Source of the DNA: Podarcis muralis
Taxonomy: Eukaryota
Length of the DNA stretch: 64,000 bases
Assembly: GCF_964188315.1 (NCBI RefSeq)
Contig: NC_135656.1
Span: 62,868,001 to 62,932,000 of the forward strand
Direction: 5' to 3'
Shown here: piece by piece, positions 30,048 through 64,000 of the stretch
Layout: every line of letters starts with the position of its first letter
Numbering within the stretch: position 1 is the first letter of the stretch
The notes under the pieces: model-generated
The model's input: the letters and a program-made list of their open reading frames with translations, nothing else
The model's database searches: none
What the model was told of the DNA's origin: nothing
Made by a program: the position numbers and the translations under genes

Positions 30048-30107
30048 TTACTTTTCTTCCCCACAAATGGCTAGCAAGGCTTTGCAGTAATCTCCAGAGG
30101 TGTCCTT
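30048..30107 (-). CDS. ANXA6: Annexin A6, last coding exon (human exon 26 equivalent)
   Basis: TTTCTTTTTGCAG| then KDTSGDYCKALLAICGEEK*; human equivalent GDTSGDFLKALLALCGGED. Confidence 0.95.
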   Translation of the reverse strand, partial: KDTSGDYCKALLAICGEEK

Positions 30108-30839
30108 CTGCAAAAAGAAAGGAAGACAAAATGAAAACCAGAAAGTGATCAGCCTCACTGGTAAATCAGAGGATACAGAAACTTAAAAATGATCTTTTTA
30201 AGGCAATTCCAACATGTGTCTTTTGATGTATCTACACTGCAGCCTTTAAATGGATTTAACTATCATTACTTTGTGCCGGAGAAGCCTCAAACTACTAGGA
30301 CTCTTTAGCATAAGCCATAACTATTAAGATAGAATAAAATGCTATCATTTCTTAATGTGGATGTTATATTTCCTTTAGCATCTCCTTAGTGTCGTTTGCT
30401 GATGAGTTATTCTTCAAAGAAACCTGAAGGGCTGCTTTTGAAGGTTACAGTTTTGCTCATTCTCTGTCTAGGAAAAAGCCCAGGTAATTTTGGAAGTGTA
30501 CAAGTACATTGATCAGGCACCTGCTACTCATAGCAGCTGTCTGATTAGATGCTATCGTGGTAAAGCACATATGCCCATACGCGTCAAATTTTAGTCTACG
30601 GTTGTTCTTACAGGAAGACACATCTCTATGGAGGAAATTCTAATGGTGTGAAGTAGTCTTACTATGACTGCACATTCTTTTTGCCACCTATGCTTGGGTG
30701 GAACATTCACCTGGTATGAACAGGCTGCTGTGAGTACAACCAGTCAAAGATGTACATGAAACAAATCATAAAGGTCAGCACAGCTCACTGCACACAAACA
30801 GGCACATTTGTGCTGGCAAAAGCCAGAACCTCTCATTAC

Positions 30840-30962
30840 CTCGATCATGTGATAGAGAGATTTGTCATAAATATCCCAAAATTCACGCCGGATGTTGAGC
30901 AGATCAATTTCACTCCTTGAGACAATAATCCTGATAAGAGTTCGGTCGTCTGTGCCAGCACC
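30840..30962 (-). CDS. ANXA6: Annexin A6 exon 25 (123 nt)
   Basis: AG/GT-bounded; [41 protein letters not shown], containing the annexin GxGTD motif. Confidence 0.97.
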
Positions 30963-31590
30963 CTTGGGAGATCAAAAAACCAGTGAGAATTTATTTATTT
31001 TTTAAAAGAGAGAGCAAGGGCAGGAAGTGAGGGGACTTTCCCGCACATTGCTATCAGCAAAATATTTTGAAAAGGTGGCAACAAGCTCTATCAACCAGAG
31101 GTAGAGTGCTTTTGTTTACAGTGATACTTGGCAGATGGTAGAATGGGAGCTTCATGATCTGTTCTGCTAATGCACATCAGCACTGAGTGATGAGCTGGTG
31201 CTGGGCACATACCAGGTAGCTGGTTCACTCAGTTGTTGCTGCCACCCCACTCAACCTCTTTGGAGCAAAGCTCTATATTTGAAATGGGAGAACGATGCAA
31301 GCCTTGAGCACTGTGACTCTCACTGCTGCATCTGTTTCACTTCCAAATTCTCCAAATTGACTCCCTTCACTCAAGCAACACACTATTTGCTGAAGGGGCC
31401 TCCTGGTTGTTTCAGTGAATCACAAGCAGGAATTAGCCATCCCTGGCCTTCTCAAATGCAGGCCTGTTCAGGAAACCACCCCAAGCTCCTACTTTGCAAT
31501 CAGATGATTATTATCGTAATTAAAAAGCTACTGATCTAGCCTTCCCTTCCCTGGTGAGAGTCAAAACAGCAAAGGGAGTGTAGTTTTTAC

Positions 31591-31649
31591 CTTCATGGAC
31601 TTGTACAGCTTGTCGGCAAAGAAAGCTTGCTTGTTCTTGACACTCCGCA
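31591..31649 (-). CDS. ANXA6: Annexin A6 exon 24 (59 nt)
   Basis: (V)RSVKNKQAFFADKLYKSMK; canonical splice sites; phases compatible with neighbouring exons. Confidence 0.97.
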
Positions 31650-33162
31650 CTTGAAAGAAAGAGCAGTGCAACATAAAAACATTGTACAGGAAGCCCCATC
31701 TCAGTCAACCCCCACACCCATGTTTTTAAAGAGCTACGGTGTCTCAAGTTGCATTTTTAGTTTGTGTGTAGAAAGAAAGGAGTGGAGAGGAAAAGACAGC
31801 TCTTGGAAAGCACCCCCCCCCCAATTACTGTATTGAATGTCCAGATTTGGTTGACAGGGTGGGAGAAATGGTTCATGTTTGCTGTCTGGGTCAATCACAG
31901 ATGGATGTAGGTTTCTAGAGCCCAAGTTTGCAAGCAGAGGGCTCTAAATGTATAGTGTGGTTGCCTCATCTCCATTAAAGAAAAAAGCCATAGATATTTT
32001 TTGAAAAACTGCACATGATTCTGTTGTTTGCAGTAGGAGGAAAGCCATATGGATGGTTGGGTAGCCACTTCCTGCTCTGTGAGGGAATTGCAAAATTTAA
32101 GTGTGCAAGGATGTTGCAAAATGTTTTAACTATGCAGCAAGGGGCAATGCATCCAGCAGGTGTTGCTTCTCTCATGACTGTTCTCCAGGCTTCTTGTCTA
32201 TCCAGCGTCCTTCTCTGGACACCACTGGAGGGGATCTCTGGGTCTGCAGTGAATTCAACAGGCCCACTGACATGCTACAAGATGACTAGAGAAGCAGCCA
32301 TTGAAGAAGCCACATTCAAGCTCAGTGGTGGCAAAGCTCGCAGCGGGTGGCAGCCATTTCCTGTTAGTCTTGGTGAAGGTACATTTTTAAAAGTCTGTTC
32401 AGGAGAACAAGATAGCAGGCAGGTCAGCCAGCCTGAGGGAATCAACATACTGCAACCAAGCAGAAAATCGCTGATAAAGAGAGATAGTGCTTGAAGCCTC
32501 TAAGACCTATATGACATACTGCTGAGCCATGCCAAGGGTTACGGTGTCAGTGAGATCCTATTCACTGATTCTATCTAACAGCCAAGTCTCAGCCGAAGGT
32601 GTTTGAAATCTGCACAGCAATCACCAATAGCAAGTTTCTAGCTCTCAAAGCTGTACAAATAAAGACTGAAAACATGCAGACAAATGTTGGGAAAGGTGCA
32701 TAGTGCACCAACGTAAGATCCCAGCTGGTTAGGAGGCATTCCACCTACCACTCCTTCCCCAACAGGCCAACAGCTAAGTCCCCACTGGATACATAATAGG
32801 TCGCCCATATAGCCTCTCTTAGACATTAATACCATTCACCGGAATAGCTGAATTCTGTGAAATACTTTATTTTTATTATATTTATTAAATTTGTATACGG
32901 CCTATACCCATAGATCTCAGGGCAGTTCACAACATAAAATTACAATTACCACCCCACACATTTCTTTGCAAGTGGAATACAACAGGAAATTTAACCAAGG
33001 CCAGCTTTCTTCATCTCAGGAATATTATAAAAATTTGGTTGACTGTCGAGGTGGACTAGTTGCAAGAGCAAGTTCGGCAGGGCAAGGTTTGCTGAAGTCC
33101 ACACTCAATGTGCAAGGAAAGCACAAGCCTCTTTCTTTTATGCCCGTGCAAGAGACACTCAC

Positions 33163-33258
33163 CAATGGCTAAAAAGACGTCGCGCACATCTCCAGACATC
33201 CGCTTGTTGATGGCATGTGCCACGTCATGGTTCGTCATCTTAACGAACTCCTGGAAGA
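33163..33258 (-). CDS. ANXA6: Annexin A6 exon 23 (96 nt)
   Basis: (V)FQEFVKMTNHDVAHAINKRMSGDVRDVFLAI; acceptor TTGTAG, donor GTGAGT. Confidence 0.97.
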
Positions 33259-33763
33259 CTACAAGGATTGAAGGTAGAGAATAAGAAATCAGAACCCTCT
33301 ACGGCGTTGGAATGACCTAAAAGCTAAGCTAGGGAACTAGCCAACTGTCCTCAGTGAGGAATGGGACTGGCAACAGCAGGGTCATAAAACTGCTATGCCC
33401 TTAGTCCACTTCTACAGTGTGTTAGGCAAGGTCAAGTATGTTCAAGGGCGATTAGGTGCTGCCACAGGGAAGTATCAAATATCAAGATGTTCTACAGAAA
33501 AGTACAGTTAGGGAAACAAACCTCCTAACCCTGAATTCCATCAGAGGAGCAGGTGTTCTTGAGCTAAAGGAGAATTTCTTTCTTTCTTTTTTGTAGCACA
33601 ACAATTGCATCAGCAGCCTCTTTCCTTCAAAGCCCCTGAGGAGGTAATAGTTGCCCTTTTCCAAACTACAATAACACGGCCTGAGAAAGGTCAGGTCAAT
33701 GAGTCTGCATCTAGGCACGGGCTCCACAACATTCAACAAACACACCACTCCCTCCCTATTTAC

Positions 33764-33857
33764 CTCTCCGGAGCTGGGGGTAGCTCTGCGTACACAAGAC
33801 GGTCATGAAGCGTGTCTCCAGAGATGTCGAATCATCACCGGAAACATCAGACAATTT
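33764..33857 (-). CDS. ANXA6: Annexin A6 exon 22 (94 nt)
   Basis: KLSDVSGDDSTSLETRFMTVLCTQSYPQLRR; the SLETRFMT-LCT-SYP-LRR segment is ANXA6-specific (repeat 7). Confidence 0.96.
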
Positions 33858-35705
33858 CTGCGAAACCAAAGAAGATTGAAGGGATGGGGAAGAACAGCAA
33901 AGGATACAGGCTAGTGAAATATTTTCCTTTTGATTCCTGAGAGCCTATATACTAGTGCATTCCTGTAAGAAGGTTGCTGTGTATTCCTCCATTAATATGG
34001 CAGCAAAGATTGTGAAAGCAGCTCAGCAAAAGCTTCTGTGACTATTATGAGAAGGCTGGCAACAAGTAGAAGTCTGCCCAAGTAGGATTCTCTCTCCAAG
34101 TGTACTAAACATATTGCCATTTGAGCTGATCCAGTGAGAGATCACCATCAGGCTCAAAAAGGTTCCATGTGACTATAACTGAGAGACACTCCCTAATCAT
34201 TAGGGCTCTGACAGCCCTCTCCATTTGGCCTGCAAGGCTGTTTTGGTTAAGCCACATATTGGCCCTACACAAGTAAGCATATAGGACATCAAGTGTGGGG
34301 CAGGTAAAAAGATGCAGGTGGGCTAAAAGGGGGACTGTAGTTGATCGGAATACCTGAAAAGTCCCATGCAGGGCACTTTGCAAGCCTTGACAATCCACTT
34401 TTTGTTGGGGGTTTGTAAAGCAATGTGCCCTTGCCCACATGGGGCAATGATGTCAGGTGACTGACTTGTCAAACTTGGCCTGTGGTGGTGAGGGAGATGT
34501 GGCAAGCCAGACAGATCCAGTTCCCCACTCCTGCCCTAATGGGTCTATAACAGAAGACACCCCTCACCCTCGAGAAGCTTATGAACACCTCAAGGCTATA
34601 TGTAACTCTAACATCTTTTCCTACCCCTAAACTGACAACTCAACTGGTTTTTTAAAATTTTGCCACAACAGGTAAAAAAGGAGGTCATATTTTGCATCGT
34701 CACCTGTGGGACATTAACACACAGAAATAGCAACCATTTCTTCCCAAGCACCAAAAAAGGTTGCGTGAAACTGCAACCTTGTTTTTATTATTGCTTGTAA
34801 GCCGCTCTGAGCCCGGCCTTGGCTGGGGAGGGCGGGGTATAAATAAAAAATTATTATTATTATTATTTTGACAATAAATACATGCAACAATGCAATGACA
34901 ATTCATCTTCCCATGTGCTTCATATGTAGTGAGAACTGTACAGCACATCTAATGGCACTCTTATGTTTTGGAACACTTAGCAGGTCACTAACAATTTCCC
35001 AATTGTTTTTAATTGTCCTCCCTGTGCAGTTAATTAGTTATTATGCAAACTTTTGACATTCTCTGCTCCTCTCCGGGTACTTTAAGAAACATTCCCCCCT
35101 CCCTTGCCTTCCCAGTTTTGCAGGCAAGAAGTCAGGCCTAAACAAGCCAACGGTAGATTTTTTATAATTTATCCTCCAAAACTACTGTAAGGGAATGTTT
35201 TCAGGTTATCTTTGGTTGGAGAGCCAGATAAATACAGGCAGTAGGGCAGGCCCAACAGCCAGTGAGATATGGGCTAAGATGGGTTTGGCAAACCTCTGAG
35301 TGGCCATGTGCCCAACTCTCAGCAGAAGACATTCCTCCCTTTGAAGGGCTGTCAAAGGACAGTTTGCTGTTTTAAGAGCTGTCCAAGGCAAGCCTACTTT
35401 AAAAGGTAAAGAGCCCAAAAAAGGAAAGCAGGAGGAGCCTTGAAGCTGCCCATTAGCCATTAGCAGCTGGACAGCAATGTGAGTCTGCACAAAGCTCACC
35501 TGGCCACAGTCTTCCCACTATGGCGAGATGTATTGCACTTCTATTTAAATCTTCAGCAATTTTGCATCTATATGTACGTATAAATTACCAAATGCACATT
35601 TTGTGCGAAGTCACGTCCTCATTTTTGACAGTGCACAAGCGGTCACTCTAAAAAACCTCCCTGTGATTTGGAAGGCACTGTTGTGTGAGTCCACCCCATG
35701 AGTCC

Positions 35706-35905
35706 NNNNNNNNNNNNNNNNNNNNNNNNNNNNNNNNNNNNNNNNNNNNNNNNNNNNNNNNNNNNNNNNNNNNNNNNNNNNNNNNNNNNNNNNNNNNNNN
35801 NNNNNNNNNNNNNNNNNNNNNNNNNNNNNNNNNNNNNNNNNNNNNNNNNNNNNNNNNNNNNNNNNNNNNNNNNNNNNNNNNNNNNNNNNNNNNNNNNNNN
35901 NNNNN
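35706..35905. other. Assembly gap (200 N placeholder) inside ANXA6
   Basis: Run of exactly 200 N; ANXA6 exons 5-21 were not found on either side. Confidence 0.99.
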
Positions 35906-37840
35906 GGTTCACTTTGTCAGAAGATGTCTCATTGGTCAGAATGGCCCTGTGGCCTAACAAGCAATTTCAAGGTTCAGAGTTCAAGGTTATTGTCAGAGCC
36001 AGGTCTACTTATTTTGCTAGATCACATGTGGACAGAGCAGCAACAGGAAACTATGGCTTGTAGCCAACCAAGTAGTACTCAGAGAAGACCCACTGAAACT
36101 AATGGATCTAAGTTAGTTAAGTCCATCAATTTCAATGGTTCTGCTCCAACTATAACCGGCATTGTCCTCACGTACACAGGGTTGTAGCCAATGATATATT
36201 TGAGGCTGAATTTCTGCAATGAAACTGAAGTCAATACCACTGTTGCTACTAATAATTAATATAACCTCTTTGTTTGAATGTAATATAACACTTGTTTGAA
36301 TGTTCAAACTACCCTATGAGGTAGTTCCCTATTATTCTCATTTTGCAGATTGGAGACACTTGCCCAGGGCAACCTAATGTCTCCATGACAAAGGCAGATC
36401 CCAATACCGAGTAAAGGTCATCTAACTCAAAGACTGCCTTTCTTGCTACTGGATTACAGTGGTTCTCAATGAAATTATTTGAAAGCACGCATTGGTTTGA
36501 GAGCAAGATAAAGAATTTGCTTACTAAAGGCATGTTATTATCTAGCAACTTTGAGAGATTAAGGTGGTAGTGGGGGTGGAGACAGAGAAACGGAACATCT
36601 TGGCTGAATGCACTTCACTATGCAAAGACCCTCGTAATTCTGAAATATTTTCCAACATCCCATTTCTACAGTGCTAAAGAAGCCATCTCACACTAGACTA
36701 ATGGACACATATCTGTGCAGCAGTTCACAAATTCTGGCTTAGCAGGCAATCATTATTTGTGGTTGACACCAACTCCTCCTTGCCCCTCCCCACCCCACTC
36801 TCAGCATGTCCCAGGGGACTCAGCAGTGGGAAATAATATTGCCTTTCACTTTGCCCTGGACAGAGACACAGCAAACTTTCTTCTCTCTGCCTCTCTTTAA
36901 AGTCCAGTACAAACAGATGCTAGATCCAACCTCTTTCTTGGAGTTCCTCCCCATCCCCTGCAGATTCATGAGTGAGCACTATCATGACAGAACAAAGAAA
37001 GAAACTTCTCACAATCAGGGTTCTCTGCATCCCTATTCACACATTACAACCATGTAGGGAATGAATGAACTAAGGGATTGGGGCTGTACTGCTGCCCCCT
37101 CCTTAAAAGCATAAATGCCCTACATACATGTGTTTTGTGAACAGGGCTTAAGACGTGTGGAAAATGTAGACAAGGGAAGGGTGTCTTTAGCTCTCTCTCT
37201 CTCTCTCTCTCTGCTGGGTGTGAAAGGTAAAGTTATCAGAATGAAGGATATAAGTACCACTGGCAAATTTGGCATCCAGCTTTGTGGACTTCCAAAAAGA
37301 AATTCATTTCTATGAATGTTCTTGGTCCCCGTTGATCAAACCCATCTGTGCTGCAAAATACAGGCTTCTGGAACTCACTCACCCTCTGTCTCTCTTTGTG
37401 TGTGTGTTTGTGTGTAGTGGGTTTTAGGCAGTCAACACGGCCAGCAGGGTATCTTATGCCTAAAATAGTAGATTCGAGATTCCCAAACAGGATGCTCAGG
37501 TAGGATGAACTCTAGTGTGTTCTCTGATCCCGTCACTTATGTCTGCCCGTGTTGTATAGGAGGGGTTCTGTGTTGCAAGGGAGGGATTCCATTCACATCC
37601 CAGTAAAGAGATATAGAATTAGGAGCCTGGTGCAAATTCTACCCTCCATGTTCCTCAGGCTGCTTCCTTTGAATTGCCCCATGCTGTGTCCAATTTTAGA
37701 ATCTATGGATCACATCTGAAAGGTTTCCACTAACTGCATTCCCCAAAAGTCAAATAGATTTTTCATTAATCTCCCCAGCCAAGATGAAACTTGCATGTGG
37801 TAGTTGCTTGCAAAACAGAACAATCCCTTCTCAAACTTAC

Positions 37841-37935
37841 CTTGCCATACAGAGCCTTGTATGCCTGGCAGATTTCATGTCTTTGCTTATTGCTTCTGGA
37901 TGTTATTAGTTCAAGTATGGCTTCCTTGTCACTGC
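37841..37935 (-). CDS. ANXA6: Annexin A6 exon 4 (95 nt)
   Basis: (G)SDKEAILELITSRSNKQRHEICQAYKALYGK; acceptor CCGCAG, donor GTAAGT. Confidence 0.97.
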
Positions 37936-38159
37936 CTGCGGAAGACAAAGAGGATGAGTCATGCCTAAAACAGTAAAACCATACAGTTCCTATTAGAAAC
38001 TATTATATATTTATTTATACCCTGACTTTCCCCCCCGATGCAACTCCAGATAAAAACAGGGACCACAGAAAATATAGGGAAAATGAAGCCAAAATCCTGT
38101 TAATGTCACAGTAATTTTTAATTCAAGTGCACAGAAGACAACTGTTGCAGGACACATAC

Positions 38160-38250
38160 CAAATCCCTTCATAGCATTATAGAGGGCCTCAGCATCCTGG
38201 TTGGCATCAAAATCTGGATAATCCTTCACTGAACCCCTGTATCTCCCAGC
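38160..38250 (-). CDS. ANXA6: Annexin A6 exon 3 (91 nt)
   Basis: AGRYRGSVKDYPDFDANQDAEALYNAMKGF(G); human equivalent GAKYRGSIHDFPGFDPNQDAEALYTAMKGFG. Confidence 0.97.
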
Positions 38251-50435: not shown

Positions 50436-50920
50436 GTGAGTGAAGAGATACCAAGGGAAGATAAAAGACTGTTTATGTATGCAACAACAGCAGCAAGAAT
50501 TATTTTAGCCCAAAAATGGAAAGAACAAGAAGTAGCAAAGAAAGAAGAGTAGCAGTTGAAAACGATGGACTTTGCAGAGCTATCGAAGTTGATGGGAAAA
50601 ATCCGAAACCAGCAGGATCAAAAGGACTGGTGTGAATTTATACGATATTTGGAAGATTATTGTAAGCAATTAACATCCCTAGCAGGGTTGACTGAAGACT
50701 TGTCGTGAGAAATATTCTCCCTTTTTATATTTATTTAAACTTGGGGGTATTTTGTAATGAGTGCAACTAGAATTGGAAAACGTAGACAATGCAATGATAT
50801 AAAGGTTAATTTTGAAAGCCACGAGGCGGGAGGGAAGGAGGTCCGTGAGCGGTAAAGTGAATCATAATGATGTGATTGTGTATTATTAAATGGAAAACTA
50901 ATAAAATTATATAAAATAAA
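50436..50920 (+). mobile_element. 5'-truncated L1 insertion
   Basis: Encodes RLFMYATTAARIILAQKWKEQEV; A-rich tail; 16-bp TSD TAAACGGGCAACGAAA at 50420-50435 and 50921-50936. Confidence 0.9.
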
Positions 50921-50929
50921 TAAACGGGC

Positions 50930-51440
50930 AACGAAACGCAGCACCACACCATTCTGGCGGGATCTTGGAAGGATGCTAATGTATTCCTTCCATCTCCCCC
51001 AGCTCACCTCACCCCGCTCCCCTTTCCCAGCAAGCTAGGGCTGCCCCCGTTTCTTGCCCCCCGTTATTAACTTACTTTACGGGCACCAGGAGGCCTCTTC
51101 TGCTAGAGCCGTTAGGAAGAAGCGCCTCCGTCGGTGCGCAGCCAGGCCGCGGGGCACTCGAGACGCCGGAGGAAAGGCTGACCTCGAAGCGCCGCAGCTG
51201 TTTCCTTTCCCTCGCCTCGGCTCCGCTCGAGTAGCGACGTCACGCGCTCCGGAGCCGCCCAGTCCCGGGCTGCCTCCCTCCCTCCCTCCCTCTCGCCCTG
51301 GCCGCCTCCTCAGGTGGGCGACGGAGCGACGCCCGCTGCAGAGGAGGACCCTGGCTGACGCAGGCGCCGCAGGGAGGTGGGAAGGGGGGACTCCCCAAAT
51401 GGGGCGTCGTTTCAGCTTGCATCTCTCTCCTGCCAGACGG
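50930..51440. promoter_or_regulatory. ANXA6: CpG-island promoter / first exon region of ANXA6 (possibly bidirectional)
   Basis: CpG-dense; CRE-like GACGTCA at about 51236-51242; minus-strand donor candidates GTAAGT (51070-51075) and GAG|GTCAGC (about 51183); about 6.3 kb upstream of exon 2. Confidence 0.7.
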
Positions 51441-51597
51441 TAGCGGCTGGATCACCTTGGCTTGGGTGTTTAGCAAAGGGAGGCAGAGGAGGGAGCTACT
51501 TAAGGCTCAGGTTTATACGCACGTACGTGGGAATATATTCTGGCGCACGCTCAGATTTACTCCTGAGTAAACGTGCATAGGATGAGGTTGCGCAGCT

Positions 51598-51842
51598 TCT
51601 GCTTTTTTGGCGATCACTCGTAGCCGAGTAAGATTGTCTTCCATGAACACGGTTTTGACAAAATAAAATTCCTTCCAGTAGCACTTTAGAGACCAATTCA
51701 GTTTGTTATTGGTATGAGCTTTCGTGTGCATGCACACTGTGGAAGCCAGTTCTGGATCCACACGTCCTTCCACAGTGTGGACATTGGTTTCTGGGCGGGA
51801 GTGGATTTGCCAAACCTGCCTTCCTCTTAGCATGTTTCTCCC
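51598..51842 (-). mobile_element. RTE-clade LINE 3' end, interrupted by a Penelope fragment
   Basis: Minus strand translates NQCPHCGRTCGSRTGFHS (CCHH finger); homologous to 16925-17165. Confidence 0.7.
51660..51737 (-). mobile_element. Penelope-like element fragment with partial hammerhead motif
   Basis: GTAGCACTTTAGAGACCAATTCAGTTTGTTATTGGTATGAGCTTTCGTGTGCATGCACAC matches the reptile Penelope terminal repeat as recalled; absent from the homologous RTE copy at 16.9 kb. Confidence 0.65.
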
Positions 51843-51846
51843 TTTA

Positions 51847-52062
51847 CAGTGGTACCTCGGGTTAAGAACTTAATTCGTTCCGGAGGTCCATTCTTAACCT
51901 GAAACTGTTCTTAACCTGAAGCACCACTTTGGCTAATGGGGCCTCCCGCTGCCACCATGTGATTTCTGTTCTCATCCTGAAGCAAAGTTCTTAACCTGAG
52001 GTACTATTTCTGGGTTAGCGGAGTCTGTAACCTGAAGCGTCTGTGACCCCAAGGTACCACTG
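51847..52062. mobile_element. Tc1/mariner-type MITE
   Basis: TIR CAGTGGTACCT; TA duplication at 51845-51846 and 52063-52064. Confidence 0.9.
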
Positions 52063-53940
52063 TATTTGGCCCTTAGGCAGAGGCAAGGAGCTGTATCAGT
52101 GCCCCTGTCCCCAACTCCTTGACAGCTCTATCACCCCTTCACACTCCAGGCGATCTAAGCAGCACAATTCCCCCCTCCTGCCCCCCCAACATGCTGTGCC
52201 ACTGAGCCCCCAGGTGAGTGTATGAGGGTGCATCCTTAAACATCATAGTTGTGCACCTAAAAAAAGTCACGTGTTAAGTCATCATAAATCTCATTTCATT
52301 GTTTTTAGTGGGATATGCAACCTGATCCTATGCTTGTCCTCCATTGCCCAGCAAGTCGCGTTTTGTTCGCTAGGAAAGTGCAAACCATAATGCTGTTTTA
52401 GTCATGGCATTAGTAACTTTTGCTGTCAAAAGTTGAGCTAGACCTACACAAAGAGCAACCTTAGGAATGCTCACCATTTAAATGCATTCAGTAATTGTAC
52501 TTGGGACTGGCATCAGCACCTGGCATCCTTGGGCAGCTGAGTCTAGTCCCCATTTTAATTTCCACAATGTTTCCAGTGTAGCGTCTCTCTGGTGCTTAGG
52601 AGGTGGCCAGACTTGGCTGCCTAGTGCTCCCACTGCTTTTCTAGCATGATAATAGCGGAGGTGGAAGCAGATCCTAGGAACAAACGAAAAAAGGAGCAGA
52701 AGAAGAACACAAGGGGGTTATGTGGCTCACATCCAGAACAGCTGCCATGAAACATAACCATCAGGCCATATATGGCAAAAATAGAGATTGACTTTTTCTT
52801 TTCTTTTTTATCCCACTTGGAACAGCTTCTTGTTCTTGCTCTGTGAGATATGATCTCTCAGCAATTTTCTTAAGCAGCTTTCCCTGTAAAAAGAAGTGTT
52901 ACAAAGCATAATATACATATTAAATTCTCATATAGCATATGCTTGTACTCTGTTTTCTGAACACTGGGATCTGCAAACTTCAAGGCCCTTTTCAGTGCGA
53001 AAGGCAGCCATTTCATGCTTATAGCCTACTAACTGGGAAAAGCTCCCCTCTGTGCTTTTCAGGGTGGCTTTTGTTAAACCAGTTGAACATGAGTGCTGGC
53101 GCGGGTGATAACCCTATTCATCACGATGAGTGGCTTAGTCCAAGCACCGAACCCTGGAACAGGAAACTCAAGCAGATCTCTGTCAAGATGACATATTGCA
53201 GGCACCACTTGCCTTCGCTTCACTTTGCATAGCAGCTGCAACACAAGCTGTTGCCAGAGACACCCAGGCATGCTCACTAGCCCCCAAACAGCTGCCCAGA
53301 CTTGCTCCAATGGAGTCCAGAGACACGATTCCCTTGCCATCACTCTAGACATTTCCAAAAAGTCAAAAAGGCCTGACTGTATCAGTATTCTTTTATACTT
53401 CACACTATTTTTGCCAGGGCATTTTGGCAACAGGGTCCAGGAGTCACGCAGCCTGATCTTATGCATGATTACTCGGTGAATAAGCACCAATGGATTCCAG
53501 GGGATTCAGATGTGATCATTCCCAAGTAAATGGTAATGTAGCTTTCTTGACCAAGGTTCAAATGTTCCAGAATTCACCTTGAATTGCCTTTCTAGTTATT
53601 CTAACAGAACAACATGAAAGGCTTTCATATAATGGTGATATTGTTTATAGGATCGAAGCAGACAGTACAAGATAATTTATTATTATTTATTATATTTACA
53701 TGGTGGTGGTTGTTTTACACTGAAGTGTCTTAAAGTGACTTACATAACAAGCAATGAAATAACAAAAATGTGTGTGCGCATTTTTGGATTCTTTCCAGGA
53801 CTGCAGTTTTCAGAAAGCCTCAAAGTGCTTTTTCAATGAAAACTACAAATGAACCCTTTCTGTAGATTATTAGGTAAGGCAACTCTGCAACCTGCTGGTG
53901 GAGGCGGGAAAAGGAAATGACCCATATTTTCCAGTCAATA

Positions 53941-54191
53941 CAGTGGTACCATGCTTCTTGAACTTAGTCCGTTCTGGGAGTCCGTTCGACTCCCAAAACC
54001 ATTCAAAAACCAAGGCACGGCTTCCAATTGGCTGCAGGAGCTTCCTGCACTCAACTGGAAGCCACAGAAGCTGCGTCGGACATTCGGCTTCCGAAAACCA
54101 TTCGCAAACCAGAATACTCACTTCCAAGTTTCAATCATTTGGGAGCCGATTTGTTCTACAACTAAGCTGTTCAGGAACTCAGGTACCACTG
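53941..54191. mobile_element. Tc1/mariner-type MITE (same TIR core, different interior)
   Basis: CAGTGGTACC ... GGTACCACTG flanked by TA at 53939-53940 and 54192-54193. Confidence 0.88.
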
Positions 54192-56589
54192 TATCTGTTT
54201 GGGAGACTGTAAGGCTTCTTTATACATGTCATTTCTTTTTGCCTTTGGGGACCATTTTCTGCAACCATTTTCATCATGGTTACCTGTTTCTAATAATTGA
54301 AACACCCCAAATTAAAATGTAGCATGCATTTACATTGATAAAGAAATCATCACTTGTAAAATAAGCAAAGCATTGTCTCCCCCTTTTGCGAGACCAAAAC
54401 GTTGGTTAACTCTGATGCAGTTTCACAAGGCATTCCACAGTTTCTTTTTGCTTGCAAGTTACACCCTTTCATTGGCTGGGGTGATACTCATATTTGTTGA
54501 CATAATCTGCTGTGTGATGGGGGGACTTGTGTGAGATGAATGTGCAAGACAATCAGTGCTTTGTGAATAACTGCACGCGTTTTCAGACTGCCCTCTAGAA
54601 AGCAAAACAAAATATTGGCCTCAAAGCTGTGCCTTATTAACAGCATTCCACCACAGCTTGGCCACCAAACATAACATGCTGAAAGTCGGAACAACTGTTA
54701 TGTATAGCAATTACAGCTATACTCCCAAACGAACACCTTTCAGTTTAAAATAGTATACTTTAGAGTTTGATTCAAGAGCCCTGGGAGCCTGATGAAAGAC
54801 CAATCAAGGCTACAATCATAAAATGTATTAGTGAGGAGCCCAATTGAACACCTCTGATCCTTCAGCCACATACTGCCCTTCATATGGGGGATGCACACAT
54901 CGTACAATCATATGGGAAGACAGTCATCAGGTGTATCCAGTCATGTGATGAGACATGTTTGCTCATTCTACATGGGTAGGTGCCGGCAGGGGTCATTATC
55001 CGGTATATATTTCCAAGGCAGGCAGCCTCTCATTTTGTGGAAAGCAAAATGGGAAACTTCAAAGTAACTGCAACAAAAATAATATGTGGTTCCTCACCCT
55101 TAGAAATGTATCCTGATCGATATATAGAAAGCCTACCAAGATATATCCAAAACCTACCAAGTGGGCAAAGGCCACTATTTTGAAATACCAGAATTGTTGT
55201 TGTTACTCTGAGTGAAATGAACTTTGAAGTGCCAGATAAGGGCGTTTAAAAACAAGAACAAGAACAACAACATCATTGAATTGATACGAAAAAGATTAGG
55301 AAAATAAGAAACTTGAAAAATAAAAATGGCAGATCGGCCCATCCCTACCCCAATGCCCTTTCCTCCTTTTTAAAATTTACTTGATCCTATTTTGCTTAAT
55401 GCCTCAACTCCACTCCTTGCACGTATCCTGCCAAATGCTTCCATTCCCATTCTCAAAGGCCTTACCCTCTATATGCCAAGGGGAACCGAGACGGAGAGAA
55501 AAGAAGATGGAGAGAGGACAAATTTGTTCAAAAGGGATGGGAGCCCCTATGTCCCGCCAGCCTGGGCAATCCTCAAATGTTAATTAAAGCTTTCCAGCAG
55601 AGCACTGAGCCGCTTTGAATTTGCATGCAGCCGCAGGAGTGATTTGGAAACTGTTGGGGATGGGGTGGAAATCTACATAGGTTCCCCATGACCAAAGTGG
55701 GGAGAGGAGGGCAGAGGTGGGTGGTCGGAGAGAAAGAAGGTTGGGCTCCACATCTTATGAAATACATTCAAATGAGGCAGAAACAAACCTACACAGTGAC
55801 TCTGGATTTGCCTCCCTCCCTGCATTTCTGACTCTCGGCATGGAGCTGGTGCAAGTGTCTGGAAAAAGAGCAAAAGTAAGTAGATTAGTTTACAAACTGG
55901 GGCCTGGGTGGTGGCCAAGAGGATTTCGCAATTCAATTTTGCCCTGCAAAAGTGAAAAAAGTGTGCAAAGCACAATTTTCAAAAGTGTGACAAATGTGAG
56001 AAGAAGAAAACTGAACATAGGAAGTGGGAAAAGGGCTGGAGTAGGACCGAGGTGTCCTCCAAGAGAGGGGAACGATTCACTGAGAGCCAAAACAAGCGAC
56101 AGTGAGTACTGAAGAAGCACGTTTTGAAAAGGGAAATCCTGAGAAGGGTAAGTGAATGATATTGTAAATGAATGACCTGAGTGTAAGTGCATGATTTTGT
56201 TGATTTAAAAGCAACACCTGGTTGGTGCTGTGTTGTAATCTATGGTGAAAATGCTTTCTTGTCATTTTAGTTCCACATACTAAGAGGAAGTTCATGCATT
56301 GCCTCACAGATTTGCCAGTTACACCTGTTAGCTGAATAATAATGCACATCAAAATTGGGATGGGGGTGGGGCTACAGAAAGGAATGCATGAATGGAAAAT
56401 GATAGTAAACTGCAAGAGCCAGCTACGAAATGATTTTAGGCAGTTTCCAAATTAAGCTGGAATCCCAGGAGGGTTAGGATGCAGTGCACATCCAGCCCAT
56501 GGGGCAATAGCCAATGGACATTCCGTGGACAGCCAGACTTAATATCTGACAGAGGAGGCAGGAAGAACAACATAGAGACATGAGCTGCC

Positions 56590-57157
56590 CTAATCAAACT
56601 AATGGAGTATGCTGAAATGGCCAGATTAACTGGGAAACTTAGAAATCAAGACCATAACAAATATAAAAAAGAATGAAATATGTTTATTGCTTATGTACAA
56701 AATCATTGTAAGGAAGTTAATGCATTAGTAGGATTTTTAAAACACTTGTAAGATTATGGAGAATATTTAAATTTGGAGATAATCAAAGATAAAGACGTTA
56801 TTGACGTGCATAAATTAAGACAATACAAAGGATCCCTCGACTTCCCTCTACTCCAGTCTTCTTCAACCTCAGCCCTCCAGATGTTTTGAGACTACAATTC
56901 CCATCATTCCTGACCACTGGTCCTGCTAGCTAGGAATCATGGGAGTTGTAGGCCAAAAACATCTGGAGGGCTGAGGTTGAAGAAGACTGGAGTAGAGGGA
57001 AGTCGAGGGATTTGAGTAATTCCAAAACATAGATTTAATACTATGTGAATACAGTTGTTTGAAATTTCTTATTTTATGTTTTTATTTTTACTTTAATGTG
57101 ATGGTTTTGTTTAATTGTAAAAATTAATAAAAATATTTATAAAAATAAGAAGAAGAA
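56590..57157 (+). mobile_element. 5'-truncated L1 insertion hosting a MITE
   Basis: Encodes KLMEYAEMARLTGKLRNQD; AATAAA and an A-rich tail; 14-bp TSD AGACATGAGCTGCC at 56576-56589 and 57158-57171. Confidence 0.9.
56854..56989. mobile_element. Palindromic hAT MITE (same family as 44181) lacking a direct TSD
   Basis: TIR CAGTCTTCTTCAACCTCAGCCCTCCAGATGTTTT at both ends; flanks are inverted rather than direct repeats. Confidence 0.9.
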
Positions 57158-57970
57158 AGACATGAGCTGCCTTACAGTTTATATTCTTTTTATTTAAAAT
57201 TGTACACCACAGCAATATGTTTAAGGAACAGTGCTAGAGAAATAGTTTGTACCAAGAGACATCCAGTGTCATACAAATGGACTTCCCTCGGCTCTCCTCC
57301 CTCTGCAGTCAACTTTGAAACAACCACGTTCAGAATTCTGCAAGCTGGAGAACTTTCCCTCACAGATGCATTACAATGTGGAACAGTCTGAAGTTCACTT
57401 TTAGAATGCTATGTCCCAGGAGGCAAATGTGTGTTCTGGGGACATTTCTTCCCAGACTTTTCTCTGTGGGTGCTCTGTAACTATGGATTACCTTCCCTTT
57501 GAGACTTCATTGGCCTCTGTCCTCCCACCCATTCACCTTTCTTTCTAGGCTGGCCGCCAGTTATGTTATCTAACTCAAAACTCAAGTCTATTCTGAGTTT
57601 CTGGCACATTAGGCAGAATCTGTGGTGTGTAATATATGAAGGAATGATATGGTCAGCACCATGTCTCATCTCATTTGATTTCTCCACTCCAGTGGCTCCA
57701 GTCCCCAGTTATGTGCCAGTTCTTCTGTTAGAGTACACCAACCACCTCAGGGAACACATGCTGAGGGACAGTGACTGCAGCTCCTTAGGTGTTCCTCCTG
57801 GTAATTCTCTTGCGTTGGAAGACAAGTGTTGGCCTGTCCCAAACTCTCAGAACTAGCCATTACAGAAATAAAATTCAGTAATGAAAGAAGCCTTCTGTGC
57901 ATGGAATGGTGAGGGTGCCATCTTGTCCTTCGTCTTGGGCAGAAAAATGTTTTGAATTGGCTTTGGAGCA

Positions 57971-58007
57971 GCCGTGATCGTATAGTGGTTAGTGCTTTGC
58001 ATTGTGG
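57971..58007 (+). pseudogene. tRNA-His(GUG) 5'-half retrocopy
   Basis: GCCGTGATCGTATAGTGGTTAGTGCTTTGCATTGTGG is 34/37 identical to vertebrate tRNA-His positions 1-37 as recalled, stops right after the GTG anticodon, and is flanked by an imperfect 15-bp direct repeat. Confidence 0.8.
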
Positions 58008-59494
58008 ATTGGCCCTGGAGCCTGCTCATATACCAAACCAGCGATTTTCAGGAGTAATGAGTTGTCCTGCCAATTTGCAACAGAGAACAAATTTCCTTAG
58101 CTCCTTAACTCTCTGCTAATTGCCTTCATTTGCCTGTCTCCTCCCTTCCACCTCATATATGGGTGGGATATAGCCTTTAGCTAGTGCTATTATAATTTAT
58201 CTAGGAGGACTTGGGTGTTATTTTTCAGGTGCAGGGTAATAATACCGGCTCCAAATTGAAAAGTACCCGTTTATGTTGGTAGTGGTGGTGATGCAGATCC
58301 AAAGATGGGTGGTGGGTTCTCAGCATGGATGAACTGGAGTGTAGTAGTCATTGTGTTTCTAAGATGTGTGAAGCAACAGCTCAAGATTCCACTGGGTCAC
58401 CCAGCAACTTTAATTCAGTGGTAGTCAATGTGGTCTCCTCCAAATATTGTTGGGCTACATCTCCCATCAGCCCTAGACGATATGACCAATGCCATGGACG
58501 GTGCAAGCTGGAGTCCAACATCTGGAGGGCACAGGATCAGTTGCCCCTACTCTAAACCCTAAAGAATATGCAAGCCATGTGAACAACTAACCTTTTCATA
58601 TGACTGCAAATATGACTGTATAACACTATGACTGTTCATAGTGAATTGCTTTGTTGTCAGCCTCCAGACTCACAGAAAGCTATAAGCAGCAGATTATCAG
58701 ATTTGCAGAGGAACAGCCTCTTGGATCCAAAGTTGCAGGGAGGTCCTAGAAGTAACATGTAGAAGATAGGAATGTAGCACATTTTTCACAGCCAATGTGA
58801 AATGATATTAAGGTGGCAAGTGTTGTGGGAAGAGCTTTAGTCTGAAAGCCATAGCCAGGGATATCTAAAAGCTGAAATATGTTTAGATTGTACTTAAGAA
58901 AACTTAATTCCCAGGAAGTTTGTCCCATTGGACTCTGAACTGTATGAAGGATTACCTACAGAGTACTACTGTTTCAGGGATGTAGAGCTGGAAGCAGAAC
59001 GGATAAATCTGCTCTAGTTTTGTGGGTTCAGAGTAATTTTTTCCTCCTCCTTTCCTTTCCACCACAAGTTTCAGTCTAAGTGCACAGGGAATCAATCATT
59101 CAAAGCCCGTATAGATCATGAATCAAAACCATTTTGCTATTGAAGACTATGGGTGACCGGCTGGTTCTTGAACTAGTTGCATGTTAGTTAATATCATTGG
59201 GGAAAAGTCACCCTGCGATGGTCTGAACTGAACCCCTGATGATAATGCCATTAACTCATGATAGTGCCGTTTCTCTGAAGAAAGAGTTTCAGCCATTGGA
59301 GAGTGTTGCGTTTTAGACAGTGAAGAATATGCTTGCTGGAGGGATATTCTGCTTGCTATTTCATTCTCATGGACCTCAAAGGTCATCCAGTCCAAAACAC
59401 AGCCGAGGCAGATTGTCAGGAAGGTTTCTGATGTTGTTACTCTTTTTATAGTCACACCACTGTTTATGATCTCTCTGGATTCTTTCTTTTTCAG

Positions 59495-59870
59495 ATGTCG
59501 ATCTCGGATTCCGTGCTCTCCTTCTATCAAATGGTTTCCCGTAGAAAAAGAATAACAGCCGGTGCCTGTAGAGAATCGAACTTGCGTCGCTGCCTTTCCA
59601 CCTCGGACTTAGTGGCTCTGGGTGTGGGCAGTACTTTGGGTGCAGGGGTGTATCTCTTGGCAGGGGAAGTAGCCAAGACCACCGCAGGCCCCAGTATCAT
59701 CATTTCTTTTCTGATTGCTGCTCTGGTGTCCATCCTGGCAGGACTGTGTTACGCTGAGTTTGGAGCCCGGGTGCCTTTGACCGGATCAGCTTATCTCTAC
59801 AGCTACATAACAGTTGGAGAGCTGTGGGCATTCGTCACTGGTTGGAACCTGCTGCTCTCCTATATAATTG
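59495..59870 (+). CDS. Cationic amino acid transporter (SLC7A1/2/3-like), first coding exon
   Basis: TCTTTTTCAG|ATG; [18 protein letters not shown]...[26 protein letters not shown]...[43 protein letters not shown](G)|GT; same exon boundary as SLC7A1. Confidence 0.96.
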
Positions 59871-59999
59871 GTATAAACAAGTTTTGGGCTTCTGTGTTTT
59901 GACATCTACCGTGTGGTTTCATTGATAAGCCAAAGAGATGGGCCTAAGAAATAATAACTAGGCAGGCAGAACTTTTTTTTTTAAGTTGATGTGAGTTGA

Positions 60000-60150
60000 A
60001 TTTGTAGCTCAGAGCATGTGTTATGCATGCAAAAGGTTCCAGGTTCAGACTCTGGTATTTCCAGTAAGGCTGTGAAAGGTCCCATTCTTAATCCCTGGAG
60101 CACTGTTGACAGTCAAGAGAAGGGTCTAAGTCAGCTTCATCTGAATGGTT
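60000..60150 (+). mobile_element. Old tRNA-derived SINE (tRNA-Ala-like head)
   Basis: TGTAGCTCAGAGCATGTGTTATGCATGCAAAAGGTTCCAGGTTCAG...; related to 3985-4152. Confidence 0.5.
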
Positions 60151-61473
60151 CAGACAACCACATCCACTCATGCCCATTTCATCATTGGAAAACCTGGGTG
60201 GCATTCAACTAACTTTTTCTGTTAGTGCAAGGATTAGTGCTAGGGCAAGGGGATGTGTGCCCCCACACTATCCCCAGATCTTCTCTGGAGGCTTGGGAGA
60301 ATCCGCAGAACAAATTCAGGGGAGAGAACGAGAGAACGTTCTGCTGCAGGAGAAATCCTTGCACTGACGGACTGTTCACCTAAGCACAATGTTGAACGCA
60401 ACCCCTAGACTACACACAGTGTGGATGGAAAAAAATGCTGCATCTCCTGTCAAGAAATGGTCCCCTATTTCTTTTGGGCCTCAGTGAATTTAGTCTGTGG
60501 TTTTCCAGCGATGTGATGGGCACGAGAACTTCCACTACCAATCATTGGCAGCCAGTCATTTATTCATCTGAAATAATGATTAGCACAAAACCATGAAGAA
60601 TCCATATGCGAATACAAAATGGCAGTAGAGGAGAATAGGTTAGTATATACTTATTTAAGATGACCACCCTCCAATGTGATACAGTGACAGGACATCTCTC
60701 ATGCAGAGGTGTTTTTTTTTACTGCAAATAATGTGGTCATTTAAGACACATATTTATCTGACACATTTTGTAACCTGTCCTGAAGGTCAGTATAGAAATG
60801 TTTTGAATGATGAAATAAAATCCTATCAATGTCTGATAGCTAAAAGTTGCTGCTCATTTGACTTCTAAGGGGATCTTATATGATAGGAGAGCTTCCACTG
60901 CAAGTTCAAATCATGGTGGGTGCATCATTCCCAATTGGCAAAAAAGTGGGTTGAGTGATAGCACACTTAAGCTTTTTATTTTTTACTTGTTATTTGGCAT
61001 AACATAGGTGATGTGTCATCTGGACTGTCAAAAATGCAGTGTTCCCTATAAAAGCAGGATGAGCGTAAAAACTGCCCCCTCCATAAACTGAGATGAAAAG
61101 ACAGAATGAGGAAAAAGAATTATGCAGCCAAGGGGTGAAATGGGTGAGCACGGAGTCAAGAAGAAAGACATGCTCTTTGTAGTGTCATATATAATGTATG
61201 TGCTGCCCACACAGCAGTTTAAGGCTGACATGCTTCCTTTGAAAGAGAGTGCTAAAAGGGCACAGCTTCATAGTACACAATGGACATCTTATACCTGAGA
61301 AAGCTGTTGTTTCGCATGGACCATCAGAGGTCCATAAGCCTTGAAAAGCTGATGCTTTATACCTGTGTACATAGAACAGTACATAGGGCCCTGCAATATC
61401 CCTTATTTTTAAGGCTCGATGTACTGTACCCATATTTGGCAGTGTTATCTTTAAACTGGCTGATTCTCTACAG

Positions 61474-61629
61474 GTACCTCCAGTGTAGCCAGAGCATGGA
61501 GTGCTACTTTCGATGAGCTCCTGGGCAAACGGATCAGCACCTTTTTCAGCACCCATATGGCCATGACCTCTCCAGGACTAGCTGAATACCCTGATATCTT
61601 TGCTGTTTGCCTCATTGTCCTACTGACAG
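61474..61629 (+). CDS. CAT transporter coding exon 2 (156 nt)
   Basis: [51 protein letters not shown]; CAG|...|GTATGC. Confidence 0.96.
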
Positions 61630-62489
61630 GTATGCTTGTACTGATTTTTATTATATTTTTACTATTGTAAGGATCCTTGAAACCCACCCTGCACCAATTT
61701 TATTGGAGACTGCCCATTAAATTTTATACATGCAAGGAGTTTTTTCCTTCCCACCATGGGCTTAATGCAACTGTGACAAATTGGTTTTGAATAATAGTAG
61801 CATCTCAGTATAGTTTCCAAACCCTGTAATTCTCACCCACAGTAGGGTCAGGGGAGAAATTAACTTCGGTTTGCATTTAGCTTACCTAATTCACATTTTC
61901 AGACACAATAAGCCCAATTCTGAAACAATACCCAATTTGCACTTTCTGAAGCCATTCATGAGCACAGCAATCCTTTGAAATTCACACTTATCCAAATTTT
62001 GCAGTGCAGTTCTCCAGCCAAGTAATGTGAACAACAATGTGTGCGTATAAATGCATACGCATGAATGACAATAACATCCAAGATGCATTATATATGGGGA
62101 AATTGCCTTTCAAAAAGGTAAAATTGCATATAAAAATGTTTATAGTAGGAAAAATTCTCGCAGAAATGCTTATTAATTTTCCTGAGAATTTCTTCTTAAA
62201 AGACATATGCAAACTTGCGGGAATGTGGCAAACTGAATTTAAGATTGGAAAAATGACAAACTGAGAGAAACCAAAACTGGCCTATTCACCCATCCCTACC
62301 GACAGGTCTTTTGCATTTACACTGTTGCTGTCTTTCTTGTTTCTGCTGGACTTGCCACTTGTTCTTTAATAGTTCTCCATGGTTTCAAGCTAGGGTCTTT
62401 CTCAGCCTTACCTGAGCTTGCCAAGAATTGAACATGGGACCTTCTTCATGCAAAGTCCAGTAGTAAAGGACTAGAGGACATGCTTTGTG

Positions 62490-62743
62490 GAGCCAGTGTG
62501 GTGTAGTGGTTAAGAGCGGTAGACTCGTAATCTGGTGAACCGGGTTCGCTTCCCCGCTCCTCCACATGCAGCTGCTGGGTGACCTTGGGCTAGTCACACT
62601 TCTCTGAAGTCTCTCAGCCCCACTCACCTCACAGAGTGTTTGCAGTGGGGGAGGAAGGGAAAGGAGAATGTTAGCCGCTTTGAGACTCCTTCAGGTAGTG
62701 ATAAAGGGGGATATCAAATCCAAAACTCTTCTCTTCTTCTTCT
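62490..62743 (+). mobile_element. Young full-length Squam3-type SINE
   Basis: AGCCAGTGTGGTGTAGTGGTTAAGAGCGGTAGACTCGTAATCTGGTGAACCGGGTTCG...ATATCAAATCCAAAACTCTTCT(CTT)n; CpGs retained. Confidence 0.85.
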
Positions 62744-62933
62744 TTCCATGCAGAAGGTCTAATATTCAATTCTTGGCAAGTTCAGGTAAGGCTGGGAAAC
62801 ACCCCTGCTCTCAGATTTTTCCATATGGTACAAGCAATAGCTCATATCTACTGTACTTTGCAAAGGACACTGCCTCCATCCATAATAGTTGTGAGGCCCA
62901 AGCAATGAGAAATTGTATCCGTTGACTCCTTAG

Positions 62934-63102
62934 GTCTCCTCTCAGTTGGGGTAAAAGAATCCACCACAGTGAATAAAATCTTCACAGCTGTCAATGTGCT
63001 TGTCCTTCTATTCATTATAATAAGTGGATTTATCAAAGGGGACCTGAAGAATTGGAAGATGAGCAAGAATGATCTGTTAATGACTGCTGCCCTCAGATTT
63101 AG
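62934..63102 (+). CDS. CAT transporter coding exon 3 (169 nt)
   Basis: [55 protein letters not shown]; TAG|...|GTAAGA. Confidence 0.96.
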
Positions 63103-63364
63103 GTAAGAGAATGGCTACACAAGCTCTTGGGCTGCAGTAAACACAGGCCACACAGATTATATTTCTACAGAGGTTACAAATTATTTAAATATCTATTTGC
63201 TGTCCTTTCATGAAATCCCCAAACAGCTACCTGACTTTGCCTAACGGTAGGACGGATCCATGTCCACCTACCATTTCCCTGCCTCCTTTGCTGTACCTGT
63301 CTACCAACTATATCCAATCAGATCCTTCTGACATTGACTTCCTTTATGTCACCTTCCTTGACAG

Positions 63365-63495
63365 GAACCAATCTGAGAATGGAACTTGGGACTTTGGGGC
63401 TGGAGGGTTCATGCCCTATGGCTTCAGTGGGACCTTAGCTGGAGCTGCTACCTGCTTCTATGCTTTCATTGGGTTTGACTGCATTGCGACTACAG
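63365..63495 (+). CDS. CAT transporter coding exon 4 (131 nt)
   Basis: (R)[43 protein letters not shown]; CAG|...|GTAAGC. Confidence 0.96.
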
Positions 63496-63829
63496 GTAAG
63501 CAAGAAAGAAGACAATTACAAAATGTCCATGATTGGTAACCCCATCCGGCAGCTAATAAAGAAAGGAGAAAATATCTATTCACCTCACAAGGGAGCCATT
63601 TGTTATTAAAGCTCTCCTGTGTCCAATTCCCTTCCTAAGAGGAGTGGAATGTGTTGTGACTTAGGCATTGCTGTTGTTGGAACAGAAATCCATAGGCAAT
63701 CCTTTTGGAATAACCAAAGCACCACGTAAATCTTTGCTTAATCTCTACAGTGACAGGTTAACCATACTCATGTGAGACAAAATGTGTAGATTTTAGAATG
63801 GTGTGACTTCTTGTGTTTATGTTTACCAG

Positions 63830-64000
63830 GGGAAGAAGTAAAGAACCCCACAAAAGCCATCCCAATGGGGATTGTTCTCTCTCTGCTCATCTGCTTCTTA
63901 GCCTATTCCGGTGTTTCAGCTGCCTTGACCCTGATGATGCCTTACCACCTTTTGGACACCATGAGCCCTCTGCCAGTGGCTTTTGAATACAATGGATGGA
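63830..64000 (+). CDS. CAT transporter coding exon 5 (partial, runs off the window)
   Basis: (G)[56 protein letters not shown]. Confidence 0.96.

Follow-up and report, generated by a model that had tools for sequence, protein, structure and literature searches.

A predicted CAT-type transporter gene near ANXA6 in Podarcis muralis and a fourth gnathostome lineage of cationic amino acid transporters

The cationic amino acid transporter (CAT) family is usually described as CAT-1, CAT-2A/B and CAT-3 plus the orphans SLC7A4 and SLC7A14, a roster based on human and mouse. A stretch of the genome of the lizard Podarcis muralis (NC_135656.1, positions 62,868,001 to 62,932,000; 64,000 nucleotides, here called the window, to whose numbering unlabeled coordinates refer) ends inside a transporter gene of this type that is a neighbor of ANXA6. 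The question is whether this gene is one of the classical CATs in an unexpected place or an additional one, and, if so, where it came from and what its product would carry. The reading that we hold to be very probable is that it is a selectively maintained CAT-type gene of a fourth lineage, designated CAT2-like (CAT2L), which arose in a block duplication, most likely during the vertebrate whole-genome duplications (2R), was apparently lost in therians, and would encode a CAT-2A-like carrier.

The gene is read from five coding exons in the window and from the locus sequence L001 (GCA_964188315.1, OZ076955.1), which is base-for-base the same as window 45840-64000 and continues beyond it. The parts of the gene model are as follows.

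59495..59870, plus strand: coding exon 1, ATG to donor, 376 nt, with the N-terminus and transmembrane helices TM1-TM3; carries GSTLGAG and GELWAF
61474..61629, plus strand: coding exon 2, 156 nt, entered in phase 1
62934..63102, plus strand: coding exon 3, 169 nt, with TM5 and the start of extracellular loop 3
63365..63495, plus strand: coding exon 4, 131 nt, with the loop 3 sequons NQS and NGT and with GFDCIATT
63830..64000, plus strand: coding exon 5, cut by the window end; its true end is window-equivalent 64052, which is L001 18213
L001 19515-19651: Arg-type affinity exon, among the coding exons past the window end
55840..55875, plus strand: upstream mini-exon of the database model P0171, 36 nt, 12 residues (MELVQVSGKRAK), 3.6 kb upstream of the ATG exon

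All internal boundaries of the five exons (59495-64000) are AG/GT with compatible phases, and read in frame the exons encode, with no stops, residues 1-334 of an SLC7 transporter of the CAT type, which bears out the original prediction of five uninterrupted in-frame exons. Six further coding exons lie beyond the window (L001 19515-24992), so that the whole gene has 11 coding exons and, with the ATG at 59495 as its start, encodes 613 residues. Homology searches were run exon by exon, while full-length comparisons used the database entry P0171 (625 residues), to which the 334 residues of the window are 100% identical and whose residues 13-137 are matched at 100% by exon 1. The mini-exon of P0171 is probably 5′ untranslated region or a model artefact and the annotated start is doubtful, because the model of a closely related sister species (P0180) and all other orthologues lack the mini-exon residues and begin at the downstream ATG at 59495. 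Intron 2 contains a tRNA-derived element resembling a short interspersed element (62488-62720, plus strand), which starts GGAGCCAGTGTGGTGTAGTGGTTAAGAGCGG...; ARAGORN called no tRNA there, and the 22-mer of the element occurs once in the window.

The assignment to the family is straightforward. Pfam AA_permease_2 / AA_permease matched exon 1 (E 9.9e-12), exon 5 (E 2.5e-6) and, weakly, exon 3, and the precomputed Pfam domains of P0171 are PF13520, PF00324 and PF13906, the last being the CAT-specific C-terminal extension (AA_permease_C, TM13-14) that is encoded beyond the window in L001. The closest solved structure for exon 1 is that of CAT-1 (E 5.6e-50; E 1.8e-221 for the full protein), and in the structure 9uat the Glu of GELWAF and the Asp of GFDCIATT align with MmCAT1 Glu107 in TM3 and Asp263 in the TM6 binding site. 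In MmCAT1 the former is needed for transport and the latter is the only residue with a charge in the binding site (PMC13022406). Working CATs have the same residues at both positions and identical motifs in TM1, TM6 and TM8. The window stretch is thus the predicted 5′ half of a transporter gene of the CAT type (SLC7A1-4/14 subfamily) with a 14-helix APC fold.

The motifs on which the earlier reading had relied (GSTLGAG, GELWAF, GFDCIATT, the NQS and NGT sequons, AYSGVS and the N-terminal start) were all found in the translation, and AYSGVS, offered there as a sign of divergence, proved to be private to this lizard and P0180, as is FYAFIGFDC; other members of the clade have AYFGVS and FYAFVGFDC, so that neither motif is a mark of the clade. 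The introns had been called SLC7A1-type. Stork SLC7A2 and the CAT2L members of platypus, bowfin and shark share their positions and phases, the comparison with a classical CAT having been made with SLC7A2 only. A separate observation concerns the Lys of ARVPKTGSAYLY (window 59760-59790 region), which is invariant in CAT1, CAT2, CAT3 and the CAT2-like proteins of fish and shark and is replaced by Leu or Met in tetrapod CAT2-like members.

A search of exon 1 against 1.84 billion representative proteins gave as its top full-length match a snake 'cationic amino acid transporter 2-like', and word searches seeded with the snake protein, a lamprey CAT and the platypus member retrieved proteins named CAT1, CAT2, CAT3 and '2-like' from across the vertebrates. 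A maximum-likelihood tree was inferred from 64 proteins and 618 columns under LG+C20+F+G4, from a set that contained no marsupial and after removal of four long-branch models flagged by a first quick tree, namely P0052 (jackal 'CAT3-like'), P0066 (pipefish), P0057 (Lampetra) and P0090. Its supports, given as ultrafast bootstrap / SH-like approximate likelihood ratio test, are as follows.

CAT2-like clade, with the window protein inside the squamates: 99/98
True SLC7A2, chimaera to mammals: 100/98
CAT2 and CAT2-like together: 99/96
CAT1: 91/98
CAT3: 100/100
CAT1 and CAT3 together: 87/78

The overall topology is ((CAT1,CAT3),(CAT2,CAT2L)). The CAT2-like clade contains sevengill shark, bichir, sturgeon, bowfin, teleost, coelacanth, lungfish, amphibians, tuatara, alligator, birds, platypus and squamates, and the true SLC7A2 of chimaera, gar, frog, lizard, bird and mammal falls outside it. 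The separate clade that had been proposed was therefore recovered, nested in none of SLC7A1, SLC7A2 or SLC7A3, and the predicted protein of the window is a member of a fourth gnathostome CAT lineage, sister to SLC7A2.

The gene also bears the signature of constraint. It is about 91% identical in nucleotides, introns included, to that of the sister species (L012), whose introns differ by about 9%, and over 432 codons the nonsynonymous (dN) and synonymous (dS) divergences between the two are 0.011 and 0.060, a dN/dS of 0.18. We take CAT2L to be an intact, selectively maintained gene. The clade evolves somewhat faster than CAT1, the lizard-monotreme identity being 70% vs 79%.

What such a protein would carry, and how, can be approached through the exon that determines substrate affinity in CATs. 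The TM8-TM9 segment of SLC7A2 has two versions, visible in gene models that run through both of the mutually exclusive exons: a Glu-type exon (PRVIYAMAEDGLLFK..IN.KTKTP) and an Arg-type exon (PRILFAMARDGLLFR..VSKRQSP) that is one residue shorter and is the CAT-2A exon. The models P0224, P0252, P0192, P0310, P0244 and P0222 (680-745 residues) have the two exons in tandem and are about 45-50 residues too long because both are read. The CAT2L exon, AMARDGLLF..VS.RQSP, is one residue shorter in the same way as the SLC7A2 2A exon, and all CAT2-like proteins examined are of the Arg type, with the Arg followed 12 residues on by a Ser in most members; these residues we take to be those numbered Arg369 and Ser381, a numbering that fits the observed spacing. 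By tBLASTn a single copy of the exon was found in each of seven CAT2L loci (lizard, chicken, platypus, sturgeon, Xenopus, shark and bowfin), while the stork SLC7A2 locus (L007), used as a positive control, gave both versions about 400 bp apart. The Acipenser sinensis locus also has, 2.6 kb upstream of the exon proper (L006 10748-10786), a fragment of 13 residues with the same sequence as the beginning of the affinity exon (GSMFPMPRVLFAM); it may be what is left of an exon, or an assembly duplicate.

An Arg at this position is associated with low affinity (PMC7584565, citing Closs 1997, Habermeier 2003). Since CAT2L carries only the Arg-type exon, low-affinity, high-capacity carriage of arginine, lysine and ornithine is predicted, and we infer that CAT2L is a constitutive CAT-2A-like transporter. 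It would be a facilitative, Na+-independent system-y+ carrier of these three amino acids with low apparent affinity, high capacity and little trans-stimulation, predicted to act in absorptive or metabolic epithelia. The Arg state is old, as it is also present in isoforms of teleost CAT1 (P0294, P0283, P0291) and in one shark CAT1 (P0365, Scyliorhinus; other shark CAT1 models have a Glu-type exon), and plant CAT4 and a hemichordate CAT have the Arg as well. The pair of mutually exclusive exons was therefore probably in place before the genome duplications and before CAT1 split from CAT2, rather than being a specialty of SLC7A2. The fuller proposal, that CAT2L is a constitutive CAT-2A-type carrier, that each ohnologue kept a different subset of a pre-duplication exon pair, and that in therians the loss of CAT2L left the low-affinity function to the CAT-2A splice form alone, is tentative, and we consider it somewhat more apt to fail than to hold.

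The differences from the nearest relatives follow the same lines. SLC7A2, the sister clade (99/96), has the same intron positions and phases, is likewise followed by a PDGFRL-type gene and then by a MTUS-family gene, and has a 2A exon (PRILFAMARDGLLF, VS.RQSP) with Arg and Ser at both low-affinity sites, as in CAT2L. CAT2L differs from it in its locus (ANXA6/CCDC69 instead of PDGFRL/MTUS1), in sequence (about 64% identity), in having a single Arg-type exon instead of the 2A/2B mutually exclusive pair, in lacking the acidic C-terminal tail ending FIL.E.TSEC/F, and in having no therian member within the top 120 matches of the platypus protein. SLC7A1 (CAT-1; 9uat, 9fqt) shares the fold, the binding-site residues, Glu107 and Asp263 and the N-glycosylation sequons of loop 3; it belongs, however, to the (CAT1,CAT3) half of the tree, in tetrapods has a Glu/Asn high-affinity exon, and differs in the sequence and length of loop 3 (about 61% identity). 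Zebrafish zgc:175280 is likely the teleost CAT2L orthologue, because the bichir protein named Zgc:175280 (P0020) falls in the ray-finned branch of the clade. It has been listed under SLC7A2 without analysis, with expressed sequence tags (ESTs) from intestine and kidney (PMC7584565, Table 1).

The origin of the gene is best read from its neighbors. Downstream of the transporter on the same strand lies a gene for a 399-residue immunoglobulin (Ig)-domain protein with a VEGFR1-3_N_Ig-like + VEGFR-1-like_Ig-like signature, termed PDGFRL-like because the gene following the true SLC7A2 in the stork has the same Pfam signature. The lizard gene order is ANXA6, CAT2L, PDGFRL-like, CCDC69, assembled with ANXA6 and PDGFRL-like from this species and CCDC69 from Phrynocephalus. 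The claim that the transporter lies next to ANXA6 holds in that the two are head-to-head neighbors; they do not directly abut, the ANXA6 coding sequence being about 21 kb away. The gene orders at the other loci were as follows.

Chicken (L002): ANXA6 (minus), CAT2L (plus), CCDC69-family gene (minus)
Agamid Phrynocephalus (L008): CAT2L and the Ig-like gene fused in one model, then a CCDC69-family gene (minus)
Platypus (L004), bowfin (L011), sturgeon (L006): CAT2L, then the Ig-like gene
Xenopus laevis (L009): a zona pellucida (ZP)-domain gene downstream of CAT2L
Shark (L010): no neighbor within 10 kb
Teleost Collichthys (L005): kinesin and ANAPC8-domain (CDC23-type) genes adjoin CAT2L

Linkage to ANXA6 in other species, the check proposed at the outset, was thus seen in chicken; the 10-kb flanks in Xenopus laevis, shark and the teleost Collichthys did not show it, and the Collichthys locus has lost its ANXA6, PDGFRL-like and CCDC69 neighbors. 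The kinesin and ANAPC8-domain genes next to the teleost CAT2L recall KIF20A and CDC23, which are adjacent at human 5q31. The Xenopus laevis gene (L009 30919-38653) is of the ZP1/ZP4 type, is on the opposite strand and stands in place of the PDGFRL-like gene. The Ig-like neighbors in lizard, platypus and bowfin are 81, 60 and 52% similar to the agamid CAT2L neighbor and 47, 44 and 45% similar to the sturgeon SLC7A2 neighbor, respectively, the sturgeon CAT2L neighbor being ambiguous in this comparison.

In human, SLC7A2, PDGFRL and MTUS1 are adjacent at 8p22, and of the lizard block only CCDC69 is left beside ANXA6. CCDC69 (5q33.1), MTUS1 (8p22) and MTUS2 (13q12.3) are paralogues (PMC11621681), and SLC7A1 adjoins MTUS2 (PMC7584565). 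Because of this paralogy and the 8p22 order, CAT2L-PDGFRL-like-CCDC69 reads as a paralogous copy of SLC7A2-PDGFRL-MTUS1. CAT2L and its neighbors would have arisen jointly when the block was duplicated, most likely in the second of the vertebrate genome duplications, one copy becoming SLC7A2-PDGFRL-MTUS1 and the other CAT2L-PDGFRL-like-CCDC69 beside ANXA6. CAT and MTUS-family pairs occur at 13q12.3, 8p22 and 5q33.1, and chondrichthyans are present in CAT1, CAT2 and CAT2L. Of the idea of a fourth 2R-derived CAT, the fourth clade was found, and 2R is the likely cause of the duplication.

CAT2L would then have been kept in sharks, ray-finned fishes, coelacanth, lungfish, amphibians, sauropsids and platypus, and the loss of it and of the PDGFRL-like gene in therians would have left CCDC69 adjoining ANXA6. 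A search with the platypus protein gave, in its best 120 hits (at least 815 bits), CAT2L proteins of reptiles, birds, amphibians, lungfish, coelacanth, bowfin and shark at 63-73% identity and true SLC7A2 proteins at about 56%; no marsupial or placental protein at the '2-like' level was among them, nor was any clade member found among the mammalian proteins fetched for comparison. Hence the gene is present in a monotreme and appears to be lost in therians. Retention in reptiles agrees with the original prediction, which had placed the loss in eutherians; as platypus retains the gene, the loss is therian or later.

Could the gene instead be a recent lizard, sauropsid or tetrapod duplicate of SLC7A2, or SLC7A2 itself? 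The NCBI name 'cationic amino acid transporter 2(-like)' points that way, as do the PDGFRL-type Ig gene that follows both SLC7A2 and CAT2L and the sequence identities of the lizard protein (64-65% to SLC7A2, the nearest classical CAT, vs 61% to CAT1 and 57% to CAT3). The clade, however, holds shark, bichir, sturgeon, bowfin, teleost, coelacanth and lungfish and excludes the true SLC7A2. Forcing tetrapod CAT2-like and tetrapod SLC7A2 proteins together costs 90.7 log-likelihood units and is rejected by the approximately unbiased (AU) test (p 6e-77); this arrangement had been named beforehand as a refutation, and the test was done after the tree had been seen. Both paralogues coexist in single species (Varanus P0192 and P0163, Mycteria P0252 and P0217, X. 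laevis P0327 and P0250), and SLC7A2 has two mutually exclusive exons where CAT2L has one. Identity with the SLC7A2 orthologue was accordingly rejected, on the position of the protein in the sister clade, its single affinity exon and the AU test, and a recent duplicate has next to no probability left. It is also highly improbable, if slightly less so, that CAT2L is a decaying or non-transporting relic, an SLC7A4-like orphan whose intact frame is incidental. Such a fate would suit its faster evolution relative to CAT1 (70% vs 79%) and the Leu or Met that replaces the otherwise invariant Lys of ARVPKTGSAY in tetrapods, and it is opposed by the dN/dS of 0.18, the full-length frame kept in many lineages since the shark split, the identity of Glu107, Asp263 and the TM1/TM6/TM8 motifs to those of working CATs, and the zebrafish ESTs from intestine and kidney (PMC7584565).

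A more serious contender accepts the age of the clade and derives it from a duplication, local or segmental, that the SLC7A2-PDGFRL-MTUS1 block underwent earlier or later than 2R, so that CAT2L would not be a member of a 2R quartet. It draws on the position of 8p22 outside the classical ParaHox paralogon that the original prediction had invoked and on the tree's supports for the lamprey sequences and for (CAT1,CAT3). We regard it as unlikely, as the symmetric ((1,3),(2,2L)) topology, the four gnathostome clades and the chondrichthyans in CAT1, CAT2 and CAT2L fit whole-genome duplication, and the CAT, PDGFRL and MTUS/CCDC69 families were co-duplicated on different human chromosomes. Several points nevertheless weigh against our favored account of a maintained fourth CAT of 2R origin with CAT-2A-like properties. 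The lamprey sequences have no firm placement (79/38) and (CAT1,CAT3) is supported at just 87/78, both of which bear on the 2R timing. Direct linkage to ANXA6 was seen only in lizard and chicken, with 10-kb flanks, and the therian absence is drawn from predicted proteins among the best 120 hits rather than from genome searches. The low-affinity prediction is drawn from one exon and two residues characterized only in human CAT-2A, and, given the hemichordate CAT and plant CAT4, an ancestral Arg may not alone fix the kinetics.

On these grounds we rate CAT2L as a new, uncharacterized member of a well-known family. The expectation of an automatic CAT-2/3-like label was correct (NCBI 'cationic amino acid transporter 2(-like)' in dozens of genomes, and zebrafish zgc:175280), and so, it seems, was the expectation that the gene is functionally uncharacterized, in that searches of the open-access literature gave no paper on the clade and no description of its synteny, its therian loss or its single Arg-type exon. 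Most jawed vertebrates would then own one more canonical CAT, its binding site intact and an affinity domain of the CAT-2A type built in. The arginine, lysine and nitric-oxide physiology of birds, reptiles, amphibians and fish, including work on poultry and aquaculture nutrition, is credited to three genes and may overlook CAT2L; if the proposed function is true, arginine handling in liver, gut and kidney of non-therian vertebrates would run through a transporter that has never been studied. The gain is incremental knowledge of a family and not a new kind of system, yet CAT2L would be a natural experiment on what sets low vs high substrate affinity in CATs, and the ANXA6, CAT2L, PDGFRL-like, CCDC69 block would be a clean case of differential ohnologue loss.

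The remaining features of the window belong to ANXA6 and to the interval between it and the transporter. A regular-expression search for annexin motifs gave one ANXA6 exon, and pieces of the chicken ANXA6 open reading frame gave more.

30060..38241, minus strand: ANXA6 coding region, head-to-head with the transporter
38155-38241 and 37835-37930, minus strand: ANXA6 N-terminal exons, located with the chicken pieces
33161-33262, minus strand: recognized ANXA6 exon
30840-30971, minus strand: ANXA6 repeat-8 exon (E 1e-43 to annexin VI vs 2e-24 to annexin V)
30060-30107, minus strand: ANXA6 C-terminal exon, recognized
50501..52000: CpG-island-like stretch, GC 0.67, CpG observed/expected 0.76 at 51001-51500 (about 0.8)

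A gap of 200 N lies inside ANXA6 at 35706-35905. The stretch at 50501-52000 is the sole CpG-island-like one in the roughly 21 kb between ANXA6 and the transporter, and it may be the ANXA6 promoter or a bidirectional one shared by the two genes.

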